From positions 2,914,001 to 2,978,000 of the forward strand of contig VJWM01000025.1 in assembly GCA_010909165.1 (NCBI GenBank): a stretch of 64,000 bases of DNA. The letters run 5' to 3'. Below are positions 37,125 to 45,527 of the stretch, one piece after another. This DNA is from Anthoceros angustus. Its lineage: Eukaryota; Plantae; Anthocerotophyta. Below the pieces are notes generated by a model. That model saw only the letters and a program-made list of their open reading frames with translations, ran no database searches and was not told the DNA's origin. The position numbers and the translations under genes are program-made. The stretch's first letter is position 1; every line of letters begins with the position of its first letter.

Positions 37125-37373
37125 TCACTTCTTTTTAACGGTTACTACGTGTTCCCATTGTCCATCAAGAGAAGCAGTCTGCTCCTTCTTAACAGTTGCT
37201 ATGTGTTCCCACTTTTCAAGACCTGTAGCACTCGGCTTCTTCTTAACAGTAGCTATGTGTTCCCACTTTTCAGGCCCAGCACCAGCCACCTTCTTCTGGG
37301 CAGTTGCTACGAGGTCCCGCGTTTCAAGATCAGCAGCAGTCACGGCCTTCTTCACAGTTGCAATGTGTTCCCA
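37125..37373 (-). repeat. Coding 54-bp tandem repeat (~4.5 units; WEHIATVKKxxxAxxxEx)
   Basis: ttcttaacag...tatgtgttccca recurs at 37186 and 37240 (period 54); peptide period 18. Confidence 0.9.
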
Positions 37374-39304
37374 ATCACCAGGCACAGGGGCAGCTATTCT
37401 GTTTGATTGAGTCTGTTCGGCTTCTTTGGTCTCGTTCCCAAACCCACATCTTTTGTACATCAGCAGTACTGCCGTATCCAAGTCAGAATCTGGCTCCACC
37501 AGTATGTCTGCAGCCTGAGATTGAAGCCATTTGCCAACCTCTACCGCTGCTGGTACCGTACAAGCTTCTAGCAGTTTGATGAATGTGGTCTGTGTTGGTG
37601 TGTGTCCATCTTGTAGCATCCGAGGGAAGAGCTCATACGTTTCACCATACTCTCCGTTCAAAATATATCCTGCAATCAGCATGCTCCATGTAACGACATT
37701 CTTGCGGGGCAGGCTGTCAAAGATCTGACGGGCTTGTTTCATATTCCCAAAGCTTGCATACATGTGAACTAGATTGGTGCCAACACTTACATCAGTTTCG
37801 AGTCCTAACTTTCTAACAGTAGCATGGATCTGTGTGCCCTCAACAACAGCTGCATCTTTCGCGCATGCAATCATTACTGCGCCGTAAGAAGATCGATTTG
37901 GGCGGACTCCTTCGAGCTGCATCTGCTGGAAGAGCTCACGAGCCTCCTTGCACAAGCCATACTGAGTGCAACCTGCGATCATAGCTGTCCAGGAGATGAC
38001 ATCTCGTGTCGACAGCTTCCTGAACACGATGTGGGCATCAAGTATGGCTCCACATCTAAGATACATGCACTGGACTGCAGTTCCAACGATAACATCCGAA
38101 TGAAATCCTCTTTGTACAACATCTCTGTGAATCAGCTTGCCGTGATTCAAATGCCCCGCATCAGTGCATGCATTGAGAACACACACATATGTGATCTTGC
38201 TTGGTTTCACACCTTCACTCTGCAACTTCCGATACAGTGTGAAGGCCTCCAAAGTATGCCCATTACTGGCATAGCCAGCGATCATCGCATTCCATGACAC
38301 CACGTCCCTCCTCAGCATGCTGTCAAATACCTGGCGTGCTGCCTCTACGTTCTGACATTTAGAATACATGTCAATCAGGGAATTCTGCACAAACTGGTTT
38401 AGATTAAGCCCCTCATCACGGATGAGCCTGTGAACTCGCTCACCATCCTCTAGACTTCTCAACTTTGCACAGGCGCTAAGCACAGAAACAAGGAGCTGAC
38501 CAGATGGCTTCACATCAAAGTCCTGCATGTGGAAGAACAAGTTCAACCCTTCTCTACCTTGATCGTTTAGCACATAACCTGTTATCATTACAGTCCAAGA
38601 AAACAAATTACGCCTTTCCATACTATCGAATTCCCTTCGAGCACTCTCTGTCTGGTTGCAGGATGTATACATGCGGATGAGATTGTTCCTGAAATATTTG
38701 TTAGCATACAGATTGTGTTTGATCAACAACGTGCGTATCCTCTCGCCCTCCTTGAATGCTTTCCTTTTTATACAGGTTTGCAGGAGTAGACCCATCGTCT
38801 CGCTATCAACCTGTAGGTCATGCTCATCTATTAGGTTCAGTGCCGAAGCCAGCCTACCCTGGTAACAGAGTTTCCGGACATCGAGGGCAACCTCCCTTGA
38901 AATCTCTGTGGGTGCAAGCCCACCTATCAGCTCAGGAGCCGACACATTCTCCACCTCATGCAAAACTTCTGAGGCCAGTGCTGCCCGAGCAGCAAATGCA
39001 TTTGAGCCGATACCCTGCATCATGGGGCCCCTTGCATCCACAACCTGAAGCCTGCCACATCTGGCAAATCGCAAACGTTAACCAGGATGTAACAAATCCC
39101 AATTCCCAGAAACGGTTCAAGCCAAAAGACATACCTTTCACTCAAGGCACCTTGAACTCTGCACAAGGCATTGTTGCAGGACGCATGATGCTGCCCAGAA
39201 ACCCAGGCTCCAGACTGGATAAACACAAGCCCACGGTCACATTCTTGAGTTCCAACATAACCCCGCATTCTGCCAGTTTCAGGATCATAAAGTTCATGTT
39301 TCAT
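37125..39304 (-). CDS. PLS-class PPR protein lacking E/DYW, with C-terminal 18-aa repeats
   Basis: PLS motifs (NLFSWTVMITGY, RDVVSWNAMIAGY, RDVISWTAMIAG, KNVVTWSMLIAGY) in ORF 37125-39074. An upstream exon ending GALSE(R) splices in frame; the start position is uncertain. Confidence 0.87.
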
Positions 39305-40018: not shown

Positions 40019-42320
40019 CTATGCCCTGAAATGTATTAAGCTGGGGTTGATTTCCGGAGGTGCGGGTCTCTCAGGAGGATACTCTTCCAGGGATTTCGAC
40101 AGGTTCATTGCATCCTCCAAGTATGCTGTGTACTTCCTGCTGGCACTCATCTCCTGCTCCAGCTCCACGTAAATGCTGTGAGTTTCGTTGCCATGGAGTG
40201 GTAAGGATCCTGATTCCTCAGCCCAGATTTCTTCCAGAAACTTGCAACTGGTGTTGTATTCCCCTGATGTGGAAGAGGCAATGGGTAGGGGCATGATGAG
40301 GTTATTCAAACAAGAGTGCTTCAAGGTCCACTCTCCAGTATACCAGTCGAAGTCGTACAAGGGCAGAAATCTCTGACCCTGGTCAGCTACGAATTCTATG
40401 GCCGACAGAATGAAGTGGAACTCATCGTTGGTGATGAAGTAGCCGAAGCTGAGCCTTGCCCACCCAGGCTTCACACCGATGTGGCCCTGCGGAATTTAGC
40501 CACATCCCATTATTAGCCGGGTACTGTTGGGTGGTTACAAAACATAGCAAAACATAGCAGATTCTTGTACCACCCACCTTCCGAATAGCTTCCCGAAACG
40601 CCAAGGATTGGTCGTCGTCGATGTTCAATAGGTAGTGACCGTAAGGTGCTGCACAGGCACACCCAGCTCTCGCTTGTATCCCAAATAAATCATTCAATAG
40701 CCTAACAACAAATCGGCAGTGTAAAGGTCTCCCTATTCTGCTCTCCACGATGTCGTCAGAGCAGATCTCCAGCTCTCTCGAGTACACGAGAAACGACAAA
40801 ATGGCACATCGTTTCACTTCGGTGTTGCCAAGTATGTGAATATAGGGATTCTTCTCCAGCCTCCTGATCGCAGTTGTGATGAAATAGTGTTCTCTTTCTT
40901 CAATAAGCCCATGACCCATGAGCTCTTTCACCCAGAAAGCTAGAGCTGCTCTCACTTTTTGCAGTATGGGAGGTGTACCAGCGTCCTCTCGCTGCTCGAT
41001 ATCTTTGGCATAAATAGTGTCCTGCAGAAAAGGGGCCAATCAGGTTGACAAAACAATGATCAATGCCCATGCAGTGCATGTGTCTCAGGAGAGTGACCAG
41101 AGACCACTTCAAACAATGCACCTGTAGCCTCACCTTGATGTGCATGTTGACGTAATCTACGGTTCCACCTCCAGAAGTTGATGGAGGAGAGTCTTTCAGC
41201 AGGTACAGATCCTTTGTCATGACCAGAATTCCAGGGGATCCAGGGCCACCCAAAAACTTGTGAGGGCTCAGAACCACCGCATCATACCCATCCAGCTGCC
41301 CAGCACGCATGTCGATTCTGACATATGGGCCACTGCAAAGTGTACAAGGCGTTATTAGACCCGCAAGAAAGTGCTCCACATGAAAAAAATCCTGCACTGC
41401 TGCCGATGAGTTTTAATAGAGGTGTTGAAAGGCATGCCTGGCTGCAAAGTCGAAGCAGGCAAAGGCACCGTGCTCGTGTAGAATGCAGGCTATGGCACGG
41501 GTGTCAGTTACCAGCCCAGTCACGTTACTGGCAGCAGAAAAGGATCCTAGCTTGGGCCTGCTTCGATATTTTGGATCCTCGAGAGCTGCTCTCAACTTCC
41601 TCACATCCAGGCCACTGCCATCATCATTCATAGGTATCTCTATAACCTGCACGTCACGCAACAGAGTTTTGTTCATCCCATCGATTTTCTGGCTGCAGAT
41701 GGCAAGCGTTGGTGAAATCATCATACCTCAGCCAAACTCTCGCGCCAAGAAAGTAGATTAGAGTGGTGTTCATATGGTCCGACAAACACCACCCACTTTT
41801 CAGCATCACCCAGCATTTCCCCAACTCTTGGACTGAGAATTGACGGCACCCATACTCCTAAGCATTCCTGAAGCCTTTTCAAAGCTGCTGTGGTCCCACT
41901 TCCACAGTAAAATATAGCTTCATCCCGTGTGGCCCCAAGGCAATGCTTAATGAAGTCGCTTGCCTCATGGGCAGCATAGGTCATGGCTTTCCCCACATGA
42001 CTGTCTTCTGTGTGGGTATTGCCTGCGAGAGCAGAGATTGCAAGCAACAAAGTTATTGGCCTCTTTCGCCGATGCACCAGAAAATACTCAAATTTCCAGC
42101 AAACAAAGGCTTCAAGTAGACGCACCATAGAAAGGAAGCAAGGTCTGCGCTATGAAATTCTCCACGTGGAGAAGGGGCTGGCCCGATGCTGTGTGATCCG
42201 CATAGGTGAGCAGCCGTGTGGTCCCAAACGGCGTCCGAAACTCTGTAGCTCGTCCTGGAATTTGAGACCTTATCCAAGCACATATAGCTGCCTCGCTTGG
42301 TTTCACATTCTTCCAGATAG
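40019..42320 (-). CDS. Class-V PLP-dependent aminotransferase / cysteine desulfurase-like domain (apparently the C-terminal half of the ABCG gene)
   Basis: TPFGTTRLLTYADHTASG, YG|NTHTEDS, FVGPYEHHSNLLSW, GSFSAASNVTG, CFDFAA|SGPY, VVLSPHKFLGGPG (PLP lysine), EDAGTPPIL, QARAGCACAAPYGH, KPGWARLSF; stop at 40019. Confidence 0.9.
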
Positions 42321-42449
42321 GTGGCAGCAACTCATCATCACTTTCCAGAGTCAGCTTGAGAGGCAACACTGAATCGCTTCTCGATGCTCTCCTTGTCAAC
42401 CACCTCCCTTTCCAGCTGGTGAAGGTTTGATGCTGAGACCTTGGAAAGA

Positions 42450-45400
42450 CTTTGCAACCTCTTCGTCTTGCTGAGATGAACGTCAGAGCTGGTCTCAAGT
42501 TCTCACTCACCCTGATCGTGATGTAGAACAGGGCACGGTAAAGAAAAACTTGCATAAACACAATACCCAGGTTCATCCATTTTCCTCGGCTATCAGGCAC
42601 TTGGAAATCCCTGTACACAATCTCTTCCCCGCTGATCAACTGCTGGTTCAGTGGATAACCTTTGGGCTTGAACGTCAGCCCCAGAAAGTCGTTCTCGTAT
42701 AATCCCTGCACACATAGCACACTCGGTCACACACATTTCATGACAATAACAAACAACTGCTGCGATCTCTCAGTCCTGACCTGAAATCCGTAGGTGTGAA
42801 ATGCAATGTATGACATAGGATACCGCCAGATTGGTTTTGGCAGATCCCAAGGGAGCCGGAAAAAGCCTCCAGTAAGCATAAAGAAACCCTGCAATACACA
42901 AGGGTGTCATGCACATATGCAGAATCAGAATGAGAGGGATTTTTTCAAGGTGTCTCGAGTCTCGAGGGATATGTCTCGAGTCCGTCAAGATGTTCCGTCT
43001 GCTAAGGGGTTGAGTGGCAGACCTGAATTCCAGCTCCTATGATGATCCCCATAAGGAAGTTTGGTATGACTGCCGAGATGGCCATCATCATGCCCTCCAC
43101 AGCAGATGTAGTTGCAAAGATCACGAGGACGAAGTAAGAGAAGTGAATCATGCCTGGATGCAGGCCTACCAGGAAGTACATGGCCGCTCCAGAAACAGAG
43201 GCAATAAGTAACAGAAACGGCAAAGAAGATAGGGTGTTGCTGATCACAAAAGCTCCAACTCCATAGTGCCCGTTGAGCCGCTCTCGAGAGAACACCTGTA
43301 ACTCCCCCACATCAGCATTTTTCTTAACATGAAGAAACGTGAATTGGAACTTCACTTGCCTTCATCTCTTCTACGAACGAAGGGAAGCCACCAATTGCCA
43401 TGAAGGTAAGGAATGCAATCACGAATGACAAGCTTGAAGCTCTTGCCTGCATGACGCACCATCATGTGTCGGACGAAAGAGAAAATCTAGATCGATCAGC
43501 AGACTTGAGAGACGAATTCATGGATACCTGAATGGCATCGTAGTCGGTGCCAACATCATAGTATATAGTTCCAATGGCAAGGCACAGTGCAACATACATC
43601 AAAAGACGAAGCCAGTAATAGCCTAGGTCTCTTGACATGTTTCTGAAGGACCTGCTAGTGAGTGTGTAGCACTGCATCAAGGTGCTTGCTTTAGTTCCAG
43701 CTGACTCCCACATGGCCCCATTCTGCAACACAAGGTTCCAAGTGTGAACACTGAGCTCCTGCACTCGAAGTAGCACAGATCTCAAATTTAAAGTCTGACA
43801 CTGTCCTTGAACTTCCACATAAAACAATACCGACCATCTCAGAGATTTGCCGGGCCTTCTCGTCAGCAACCTTGGAGTAGGAGGACCTGTTGTAATTGGC
43901 CACAAGAATTTCCGTGCGTTGGGACGTGGAAATGACACGTAGGGGTTCAGCTTGCTCAAGATCAAGGTCCTGGTTCCCTCCAGCACCATCCTGCGATCAT
44001 TTCACCCAACATTCCTAAGACTCCGAAAGAGCTGGGTACTTCAGCCAGCTGGCCGCAGGAAACAATCTGATCACCTTCTGGAATTGGGCACTCGTTGGAA
44101 GAGCTGCCGTAACATCGTCAAAGTCCGAGTTGATTGCACGAAGAAAATGATCAGCAGGATTCCGCCATGGCGGGCAAGGTAATCCCACGTCCTCGAAATG
44201 CTGCTCAAGATTGTAACAAGACACAGGCCAGCCAGAAGGAGGCCTTCAATATGTGCAATGGCATATGGTGGGATGCTCTTGGACCGGTCGTGAAACCTTT
44301 ACCTGGTGAGCTTCCGCAGCTGAACCAAAGTACACAGTCTTCCCTCCAGAGATGAGCAAAAGGATGTCGAAGAGTTCAAACACCTCACTGCAGGGCTGGT
44401 GAATGGAGGTGATGACGGTGCGGCCATCTCGAGCCAGATTCTTCAACGCGGTTGTCACAAAGAAGGCTGCAGCACTGAAAGTCTTAAAGCATTCAACACA
44501 TGCCGGCTCCATTCTCAATTGAAATCCAGCACTCCTAGTTCAACGTGCTCCTCAAATCATCCCAAACCCATGGAATCCGATGGAGTGCAATTTAATGCAA
44601 TCTCGCGACGTGTACAGTAAATACCTGTCCAAACCACTGGTGGGCTCGTCCAGAAGCAGCAATCGAGGCCTGGTGAGGAGCTCCAGAGCAATTGTGACTC
44701 GTCTCCGTTCACCACCGCTCAGGCCTTTCAAATGCCAGTTGCCCACAGCGGTGTGGACAACATCACGCAGCCCCATGTCGTTGATTGCGCTGTCAACAAT
44801 TCCCATCTTTTCATTCCTTGACATACTATCCGGAAGCCGGCAGAACGCACTCAACGTCAGCGTCTCCAACACGGTTAGCGTTCCCAACAAGGTGTCATCC
44901 TGTGGCACATAAGCCTGCAGTAACACACAATCTCCACATTCTGAGACCTCAATTCGGCATCACGGGACATGTGATGATGTGACGTCATCCGAATCCGAAT
45001 GTTCTGTTGTCCCTCAAATCAATGAGTAAAACATTCTGTTCTACAATCGAGATTACATGATCGATCGACCACTTCCGAATCAGAACACCTTACCGCAATA
45101 CCATAAGCAAGTCTGTGTCTCTTGCCATTCAGGAAAACTTCTCCCGTCTGTCTCGCATTCTTGGACAGTCTCCCTACACAGGTCCAAGCAAATTGAAGCT
45201 GTGCAGTCAGTGACCAACTTCCTTGTCATCAGTCCTTAGTACATGGCCTACAATAAGTAATTTCTTCTTCTTTCTTCTTTGTCTGCATGATTCCCCACTT
45301 CAACTGTATGAATCAATAGACTCACCGGCCAGAGTGTCCAGAAGAGTGGATTTTCCGGAGCCCGAAGGCCCCATAACAGCAGTGATGGTGCCAGGTTCAG

Positions 45401-45527
45401 CATAGCCTGTGAGGCCATCGATCAGAGTGTTTATGCTACTCCTCCAAGACACCGTGACTGAAAGATTGGACCAAGCCAAGTAGGCACCCACTTCAAGTTC
45501 CTTCCCTGGCCTTGAGGTGAGCTCCAT
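42450..45527 (-). CDS. ABCG (WBC) half-transporter, ABCG11-like; no stop codon after the last TM helix
   Basis: Walker [17 protein letters not shown], signature LSGGERRR, Walker [81 protein letters not shown]; ATG at 45527. Confidence 0.93.

Follow-up and report, generated by a model that had tools for sequence, protein, structure and literature searches.

Transporters of the G subfamily of ATP-binding cassette (ABC) proteins form a large family in plants, where they export cuticle lipids, hormones, and defence compounds. ABC proteins of other kinds work alongside cysteine desulfurases: the mitochondrial transporter Atm1/ABCB7/ATM3 pairs functionally with NFS1, and SufBC2D pairs with SufS. 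In plant ABA3, a NifS-like domain is fused to a MOSC domain. To our knowledge, pairings of a desulfurase with an ABC exporter are otherwise known only as separate proteins, and natural gene fusions have long been taken as a hint of cooperation between two proteins. Here, we describe a gene in the hornwort Anthoceros angustus, found in a 64,000-nucleotide (nt) stretch of contig VJWM01000025.1 (positions 2,914,001 to 2,978,000; hereafter the window), in which an ABCG half-transporter and a class-V pyridoxal 5'-phosphate (PLP) enzyme share one reading frame. This locus is a real, transcribed, lineage-restricted gene fusion, and it represents a new domain architecture assembled from two known families.

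When its 16 exons on the minus strand are joined and translated (45527 to 40019; Table 1), the locus yields a single open frame with a coding sequence of 3,885 nt, whose sole stop is the terminal codon at 40021-40019. The initial annotation had proposed a fused protein of ~1,200 amino acids (aa); the fusion itself stands, and the product is somewhat longer, at 1,294 residues. Residues 1-646 make up an ABCG/WBC half-transporter that is complete, having the full set of ATPase motifs and six predicted membrane helices, and residues ~693-1294 make up a complete class-V PLP enzyme that includes the lysine K950 and the SufS-type cysteine C1114. The 15 introns measure 64-179 nt, and 13 of them are GT-AG while two are read as GC-AG. 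Joints for 10 of the 15 are present in spliced public contigs, comprising introns 5-7, 9-12, 14, and 15 (all GT-AG) and intron 13 (41333-41437), which is GC-AG according to the spliced contigs of two runs. For intron 8 (43296-43359), the contig joint was reported as CC..TG, and shifting it by one base gives GC-AG and keeps the frame. Introns 1-4 were set by homology and splice consensus, with the first five exons guided by the 764-aa plant ABCG P0093 and the remaining joints taken from the spliced contigs.

The two halves meet within exon 11, which the initial annotation had delimited exactly, with the acceptor tgtgcag/GGA and the donor CTATG/gtgcgt. This junction exon lies inside a 204-codon open stretch on the minus strand (42726-42115), which contains LYENDF in its ABCG part. 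Read from 5' to 3', the exon codes for the final extracellular loop of the transporter, then membrane helix 6, the ABCG tail, and a linker, and it closes with ~55 residues from the start of the conserved PLP domain, which read AAICAWIRSQIPG...TPFG...YADHTASG...LLPFYG. As had been claimed from the sequence, no stop and no methionine follow the last helix: the exon is free of in-frame stops, its only methionines are M607 and M614, at or within helix 6, and the next in-frame methionine is M770 in exon 12. The latter exon (42022-41727) continues in phase as G-NTHTEDS, also as first described. When the junction exon is modelled with AlphaFold, helix 6 continues into the tail as one confident helix to about aa 644, followed by low-confidence coil over aa 655-690 and by enzyme N-terminal helices that are formed from about aa 693. 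The ~45 linker residues between the ABCG tail and the enzyme match no recognisable family or domain and are predicted to be disordered, giving a modelled picture of a flexible tether. Clear similarity to the stand-alone enzyme P0001 begins at about SDSVLPLKLTLES (aa ~672), and the ABCG tail is cut short at about aa 648; these limits of homology on either side place the fusion point at about aa 648-672.

Public sequencing data carry the same junction. We compared the window between 39900 and 45750 with contigs of four public runs, two of which (X1 and X2) were called RNA-derived from their spliced contigs and two of which (X18 and X20) were called DNA since their introns are kept. In X1, from an organism identical to the window (organism A), one contig contains part of exon 9 followed by exon 10 and by exon 11 in its entirety, through to the donor, with other contigs covering exons 12-16 and their joints. 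In X2, from organism B (~96% alike in DNA), a single 3,239-nt contig extends from exon 5 through exons 6-16, including the whole junction exon, and into the 3' untranslated region. The contigs of X18 (also organism B) and X20 (organism C) are collinear over the junction. An indel in the linker, which the initial annotation had held to be incompatible with a fusion, is not seen in X1 or X2: exon 11 shows 0 differences and 0 gaps relative to the window in X1, and in X2, where it is joined to the upstream ABCG exons and to exon 12, it shows 23 substitutions and 0 gaps. The only coding indel listed is one of 6 nt in exon 15, the others falling in an intron or beyond the stop. This insertion, CAACAG at 40732, is found in organisms B and C relative to the window, and is placed in-frame in a variable segment before the active-site loop. 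A false read-through created by a collapsed intergenic region or a missed indel comes to mind only because the window is a single assembly, and we found no support for it; as four independently built contig sets agree, assembly error is removed as an explanation, and a sequence error of either kind is very improbable.

Separately from the junction, in three of the four runs the segment at 44117-44181 in exon 5 draws high-depth contigs that then diverge into dissimilar sequence, and the long X2 contig breaks there. This segment is probably a conserved block common to paralogous ABCG genes.

The contigs also bear on whether one locus might instead give rise to two separate proteins. On that account, the ABCG would be made from an mRNA that ends in the linker, retains intron 11 (with a stop after LLPFYGAST), or uses the donor at 42510, and the enzyme would be made from an internal start at M607 or M614 as a ~690-residue protein with helix 6 as its N-terminal membrane anchor, so that the bridging contigs would be merged overlapping transcripts. 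Contigs show neither molecule ends nor single molecules, the depth of the X1 contigs rises from 4.3-5.5 in the ABCG half to ~8 in the enzyme half (depth being a poor measure), each half usually occurs elsewhere as a stand-alone homologue, and a consensus donor, GTGAGT, stands directly after helix 6, all of which could be taken in favor of separate products. By frame arithmetic, splicing this donor to exon 12 would yield an ABCG-only protein with 13 further codons before a stop. However, neither this donor nor any acceptor inside exon 11, which the initial annotation had named as a possible separate route to the enzyme, is used among the joints listed, and the X2 run has the exon 11-12 splice and the ABCG exons on one contig. 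The frame itself speaks against separate products as well, as no in-frame stop follows the ABCG tail and the lack of an in-frame methionine between M614 and M770 means that a soluble enzyme-only product would be missing YADHTASG and NTHT. We consider separate proteins rather unlikely on balance. The GTGAGT donor was also tried as the true end of the exon and was rejected as the main form, given that homology to ABCG tails extends beyond it and that both RNA-derived contigs read through.

Both halves of the predicted protein retain the hallmarks of their families. Pfam places ABC_tran in exons 1 and 3, ABC2_membrane in exon 9, and Aminotran_5 in three exons downstream, bearing out the domain order predicted at the outset; the nucleotide-binding domain (NBD) is thus N-terminal of the transmembrane domain (TMD), with strand and frame shared between them, which is the reverse topology of ABCG proteins. 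The ATPase motifs are intact, including the Walker A motif at aa 53-61, the Q-loop YVPQDD at 96-101, the signature at 159-166, Walker B at 179-190, and the H-loop at 214-218. In a hydropathy scan, six segments stood out as hydrophobic, all of them within aa 380-628, with no further one past aa 630, and six predicted membrane helices imply that a C-terminal extension should be on the side of the ATPase domain, i.e. the cytosol. The cytosolic C-terminus assumed in the initial annotation fits with this helix count and with a linker that is predicted to be disordered.

The order of NBD and TMD, the ATPase motifs, ABC2_membrane, and the six helices are all common to plant ABCG/WBC half-transporters (P0093, 764 aa; P0007, P0015, P0054, P0060), and the post-helix tail E-N/D-x-x-P is shared with the last-exon open reading frames (ORFs) of stand-alone ABCGs, one of which also has ARRR. 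The likeness ends shortly thereafter. In most of the aligned last-exon ORFs a stop occurs 25-55 residues past E-N/D-x-x-P (~140 past in P0093), whereas in the fused gene the tail is shortened at ~aa 648 and the frame runs 650 more residues into the enzyme. On the basis of the tail motif we take the transporter half to be ABCG11-like, with a putative link to Arabidopsis ABCG11 itself through the tail of that protein.

In the enzyme half, Aminotran_5 (PF00266) was matched by three separate exon translations with scores of 21.7, 23.5, and 22.8 bits, against a gathering score of 21.5, and the three matches jointly span positions 26-348 of the 371 in the profile. The nearest solved structures are SufS-type cysteine desulfurases (E = 8e-19, with the plant homologue P0087 as the query), and we carried SufS residues to the window through the alignment of P0087 with 9ddd_A together with our own alignment of P0087 with the window. 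The PLP lysine that had been called intact from the sequence is indeed so (K950, in LSPHK), with SPHK aligned to GHK of SufS. The His-His motif reads EHHSN in the window and EHHAN in SufS, and the active-site loop reads R-A-G-C-A-C-A-A-P in the window and R-x-G-H-H-C-A-x-P in SufS, which puts C1114 on the catalytic cysteine. Overall, the fused enzyme has in common with the SufS/CsdA group II desulfurases (PDB 8d8s, 9ddd, 5xt5, 1jf9) the PLP lysine, EHH(S/A)N, the aspartate before the PLP-ring contact, the arginine, and the loop cysteine (R-x-G-x-x-C-A-x-P). It differs from them in that the glutamine of SufS D-G-A-Q is alanine or serine here, and in an extra C-terminal region of ~150 residues; a SufE/SufU partner is not known for it, no search having been aimed at one. 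The plant homologues P0087 and P0118 reach just 113 and 110 bits against TIGR01979 (SufS), well below its cut-off of 475, and by sequence the family is a SufS-like sister family, not SufS proper. The early description of the enzyme as cysteine-desulfurase-like therefore holds for the lysine, His-His, arginine, and cysteine residues but does not extend to membership in SufS itself (113 vs 475 bits).

Over its whole length, the enzyme half is collinear with plant homologues that stand alone (P0009, P0087, P0118; 480-696 aa), through to the C-terminal FRA/FRV, and a tblastn search with P0118 matched every enzyme exon of the fused gene. The streptophyte stand-alone class-V family (~550-700 aa; P0087, P0118, P0009, and the gene on contig L001 described below) shares with the fused enzyme the AWLRSQI...YADHTASG...GNTHT block, the GQRFLPLY...FRV extension, and an intron-bearing layout. 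Streptophyte clusters of this family are named only "Aminotransferase class V domain-containing protein", are 550-650 aa long, and have no further domain. Stand-alone members start at their own methionine, and their N-terminal region, 35-130 residues long, is free and variable; in the fused gene the frame is instead open back into the ABCG, with neither a start codon of its own nor a free N-terminus for the enzyme, and a transporter replaces or joins that region.

Table 1. Features of the fused gene, in coordinates of the window, with the evidence used to place each one.
Feature	Position	Strand	Evidence
Whole fused coding sequence	40019..45527	-	16 exons; splice joints and homology guides
Exon 1: start ATG at 45527, Walker A GPSGSGKST (aa 53-61)	45326..45527	-	ABC_tran match; boundary from GT consensus and P0093 homology
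Exon 2	45094..45173	-	Frame and GT-AG only
Exon 3: Q-loop, ABC signature LSGGERRR, Walker B	44625..44914	-	X1 contig piece ends precisely at 44625
Exon 4: H-loop SIHQP	44303..44474	-	Motif and assembled model
Exon 5	44075..44200	-	Donor supported by X2 joint 43989/44074
Exon 6	43835..43990	-	Contig joints
Exon 7: membrane helix 1	43528..43722	-	Contig joints, hydropathy
Exon 8, followed by intron read as GC-AG	43360..43446	-	Joint reported as CC..TG, moved one base
Exon 9: membrane helices 3-5, ABC2_membrane	43023..43295	-	Pfam, contigs, hydropathy
Exon 10	42781..42888	-	Joints in X1 and X2
Exon 11 (junction exon), aa 564-756	42126..42705	-	Whole-exon pieces in X1 and X2
Membrane helix 6, aa 606-629	42508..42579	-	Hydropathy; AlphaFold helix with predicted local distance difference test (pLDDT) >88
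Consensus donor GTGAGT inside exon 11, right after helix 6	42505..42510	-	Sequence; no listed contig joint uses it
Conserved ABCG tail, aa 630-646	42457..42507	-	Aligns with tails of stand-alone ABCG last exons
Disordered linker core (predicted), aa 655-690	42325..42432	-	pLDDT <50, coil
Exon 12: NTHTEDS, YEHHSN	41727..42022	-	Pfam, contig joints
Exon 13, followed by GC-AG intron	41438..41646	-	Pfam, contig joints
Exon 14: PLP lysine K950 (codon 41259-41257) in LSPHKFLGGPG	41134..41332	-	Aligned to SufS lysine via P0087
Exon 15: active-site loop ARAGCACAAPY, C1114 (codon 40655-40653)	40578..41021	-	Pfam, alignment to SufS cysteine
Exon 16: KPGWARLSF, family C-terminal extension, ends IHFRA and stop	40019..40486	-	Alignment with homologues

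The initial annotation knew of no ABCG with this architecture, and no protein or paper with it came to light in our searches. When the junction exon was searched with phmmer against a library of 1.84 billion representative proteins, many of whose entries are ORFs called without splicing, it gave 208 hits but none matching both halves, with each genuine hit listed corresponding to either the ABCG end or the enzyme start alone. The sole long hit with multiple matching stretches, P0030, was set aside as an unrelated repeat protein. A word-indexed search with the junction exon, over a range of 106-338 aa, gave just two weak matches to the enzyme start, the ESM Atlas yielded no usable match, and a literature search brought up no account of an ABCG-PLP fusion. 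The enzyme start is matched most closely by P0001 (47% identical), an ORF corresponding to the first exon of a stand-alone homologue, which lies on a 7.3-kb contig (L001). That gene has its own methionine, with a stop 21 codons ahead of it, and no ABCG is found upstream within 4.85 kb on either strand. A second contig (L002), which carries an ABCG last exon, has an unrelated ATS3/PLAT gene downstream. Ancient adjacency of the ABCG and enzyme genes was considered and is rejected for these two recovered loci. Because both stand-alone loci are unfused, we read the fused state from these comparisons as being derived, and we see the fusion only in the three labelled organisms (A, B, and C), which are at least 90% alike in DNA.

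Such a restricted distribution also raises the question of whether the chimera is a recent neutral accident, with halves that do not cooperate, one of them perhaps impaired or decaying while another genomic copy may supply the enzyme. The limitation of the fusion to organisms so closely alike, the unfused state of more distant loci, and a linker that is predicted to be disordered and is devoid of any recognisable domain are all compatible with this scenario, and lineage-specific read-through fusions are in general common in eukaryotic genomes. Nevertheless, all catalytic motifs of both halves are intact across 16 exons, the one coding indel listed has a length divisible by three, and the fusion persists in all three labelled organisms. 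Exons also differ from those of organism B less than introns do (~4% vs ~8%, a rough count from the contig table). Taken together, a neutral accident seems unlikely to us.

Several observations weigh against a single fused product that has been shaped by selection. The junction exon diverges slightly faster than the other coding exons (4.0% vs ~3%), and the fusion is lacking from both of the more distant homologue loci (one per half), such that it may be of recent origin and selection may not have acted on it yet. In addition, the RNA origin of X1 and X2 is a guess drawn from splicing, and short-read contigs may merge overlapping transcripts and show no 5' or 3' molecule ends, with no single spanning molecule seen. 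Among the relatives, the junction exon is known to be free of indels in X2 only, and stop codons are not readable there; support throughout is at the level of nucleic acid. Weighing these points against the intact frame and the bridging contigs, we put at roughly 65% the probability that the main product is a fused transporter-enzyme, in which two SufS-like PLP domains are tethered to the cytosolic face of a membrane ABCG dimer.

We propose that such a protein would have arisen when an ABCG11-like half-transporter gene lost its tail end and stop codon, with the last ABCG exon now continuing directly into sequence for the N-terminal region of a class-V (SufS-like) PLP enzyme of streptophytes. 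Judging from the anatomy of the two halves, the fused protein would sit in the membrane as an ABCG dimer with both the NBD and the C-terminus in the cytosol, the ~45-residue linker could leave the tethered pair of PLP domains free to dimerise, as their fold requires, and the enzyme would then work at the cytosolic mouth of the pump. Since the PLP lysine, His-His, arginine, and loop cysteine of SufS-type desulfurases are kept, the enzyme would most likely cleave a C-S (or C-Se) bond in a cysteine-like substrate, with a persulfide on C1114. As for what the fusion brings, local coupling would be the likeliest benefit, whereby a product or sulfur species is made at the site of export, or a conjugate, whether imported or exported, undergoes processing at that site. 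That enzyme and pump are in fact coupled, with the enzyme feeding or processing the substrate of the pump, is a hypothesis only, and one that we regard as doubtful. Similarly tentative is the picture of a working transporter-enzyme in which a SufS-like PLP dimer at the ABCG gate makes a sulfur- or selenium-bearing or amino-acid-derived compound, or strips a cysteine conjugate, and hands it to the pump.

The locus may prove useful under either outcome. The enzyme family has no function in the sources that we reached, and the fusion offers a lead to its substrate via the cargo of the ABCG, as well as a lead to a possible hand-off from enzyme to exporter. Should the chimera be only a young neutral accident, it would document how a deletion between neighbouring genes makes a new multi-domain membrane protein. 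Just downstream of the fused gene lies a long ORF for a pentatricopeptide repeat (PPR) protein (37125-39074, minus strand), the C-terminal end of which has four copies of (K/D/Q)WEH(I/V)(A/V)TVKK at a spacing of ~18-27 residues, an odd feature for a PPR protein.

Fusion is not foreign to this enzyme family. Its bacterial members are often fused at the N-terminus to cNMP-binding, hemerythrin, or GST domains (e.g. P0139, P0190, P0203), and one of these, P0139, is 37% identical to the plant homologues across the enzyme; the frequency of such fusions indicates that the enzyme tolerates, and repeatedly acquires, an N-terminal partner. The bacterial partners are soluble sensor-type domains, in contrast to the membrane transporter of the hornwort gene. 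No ABC domain was present among the 240 rows listed for a 936-aa bacterial query and a mixed plant/bacterial profile, although these are bacterial rows only and so are uninformative on plant fusions. Some of the relatives with hemerythrin, GST, and cNMP-binding domains are long (P0190, P0192, and P0203; 1,363-1,444 aa), and their composition suggests redox or small-molecule sensing upstream of the enzyme family. The bacterial neighbourhood of a further family member, P0310, provided no functional clue, its flanking genes being unrelated and on the opposite strand.

Beyond this family, the nearest parallels are by analogy only. The Atm1/ABCB7/ATM3-NFS1 and SufBC2D-SufS systems resemble the fused gene in that a desulfurase works with an ABC machine, but they are built from separate polypeptides and from other ABC subfamilies, with no ABCG involved. 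In plant ABA3, a NifS-like domain serves as a fusion module, much as the enzyme domain does here, and this likeness is likewise one of analogy. We found no known case of an ABCG transporter that carries an enzyme. If the working transporter-enzyme sketched above is real, the hornwort protein would be a single-polypeptide counterpart of the desulfurase and ABC-exporter pairings, and the first member of the ABCG subfamily to contain a catalytic metabolic domain.

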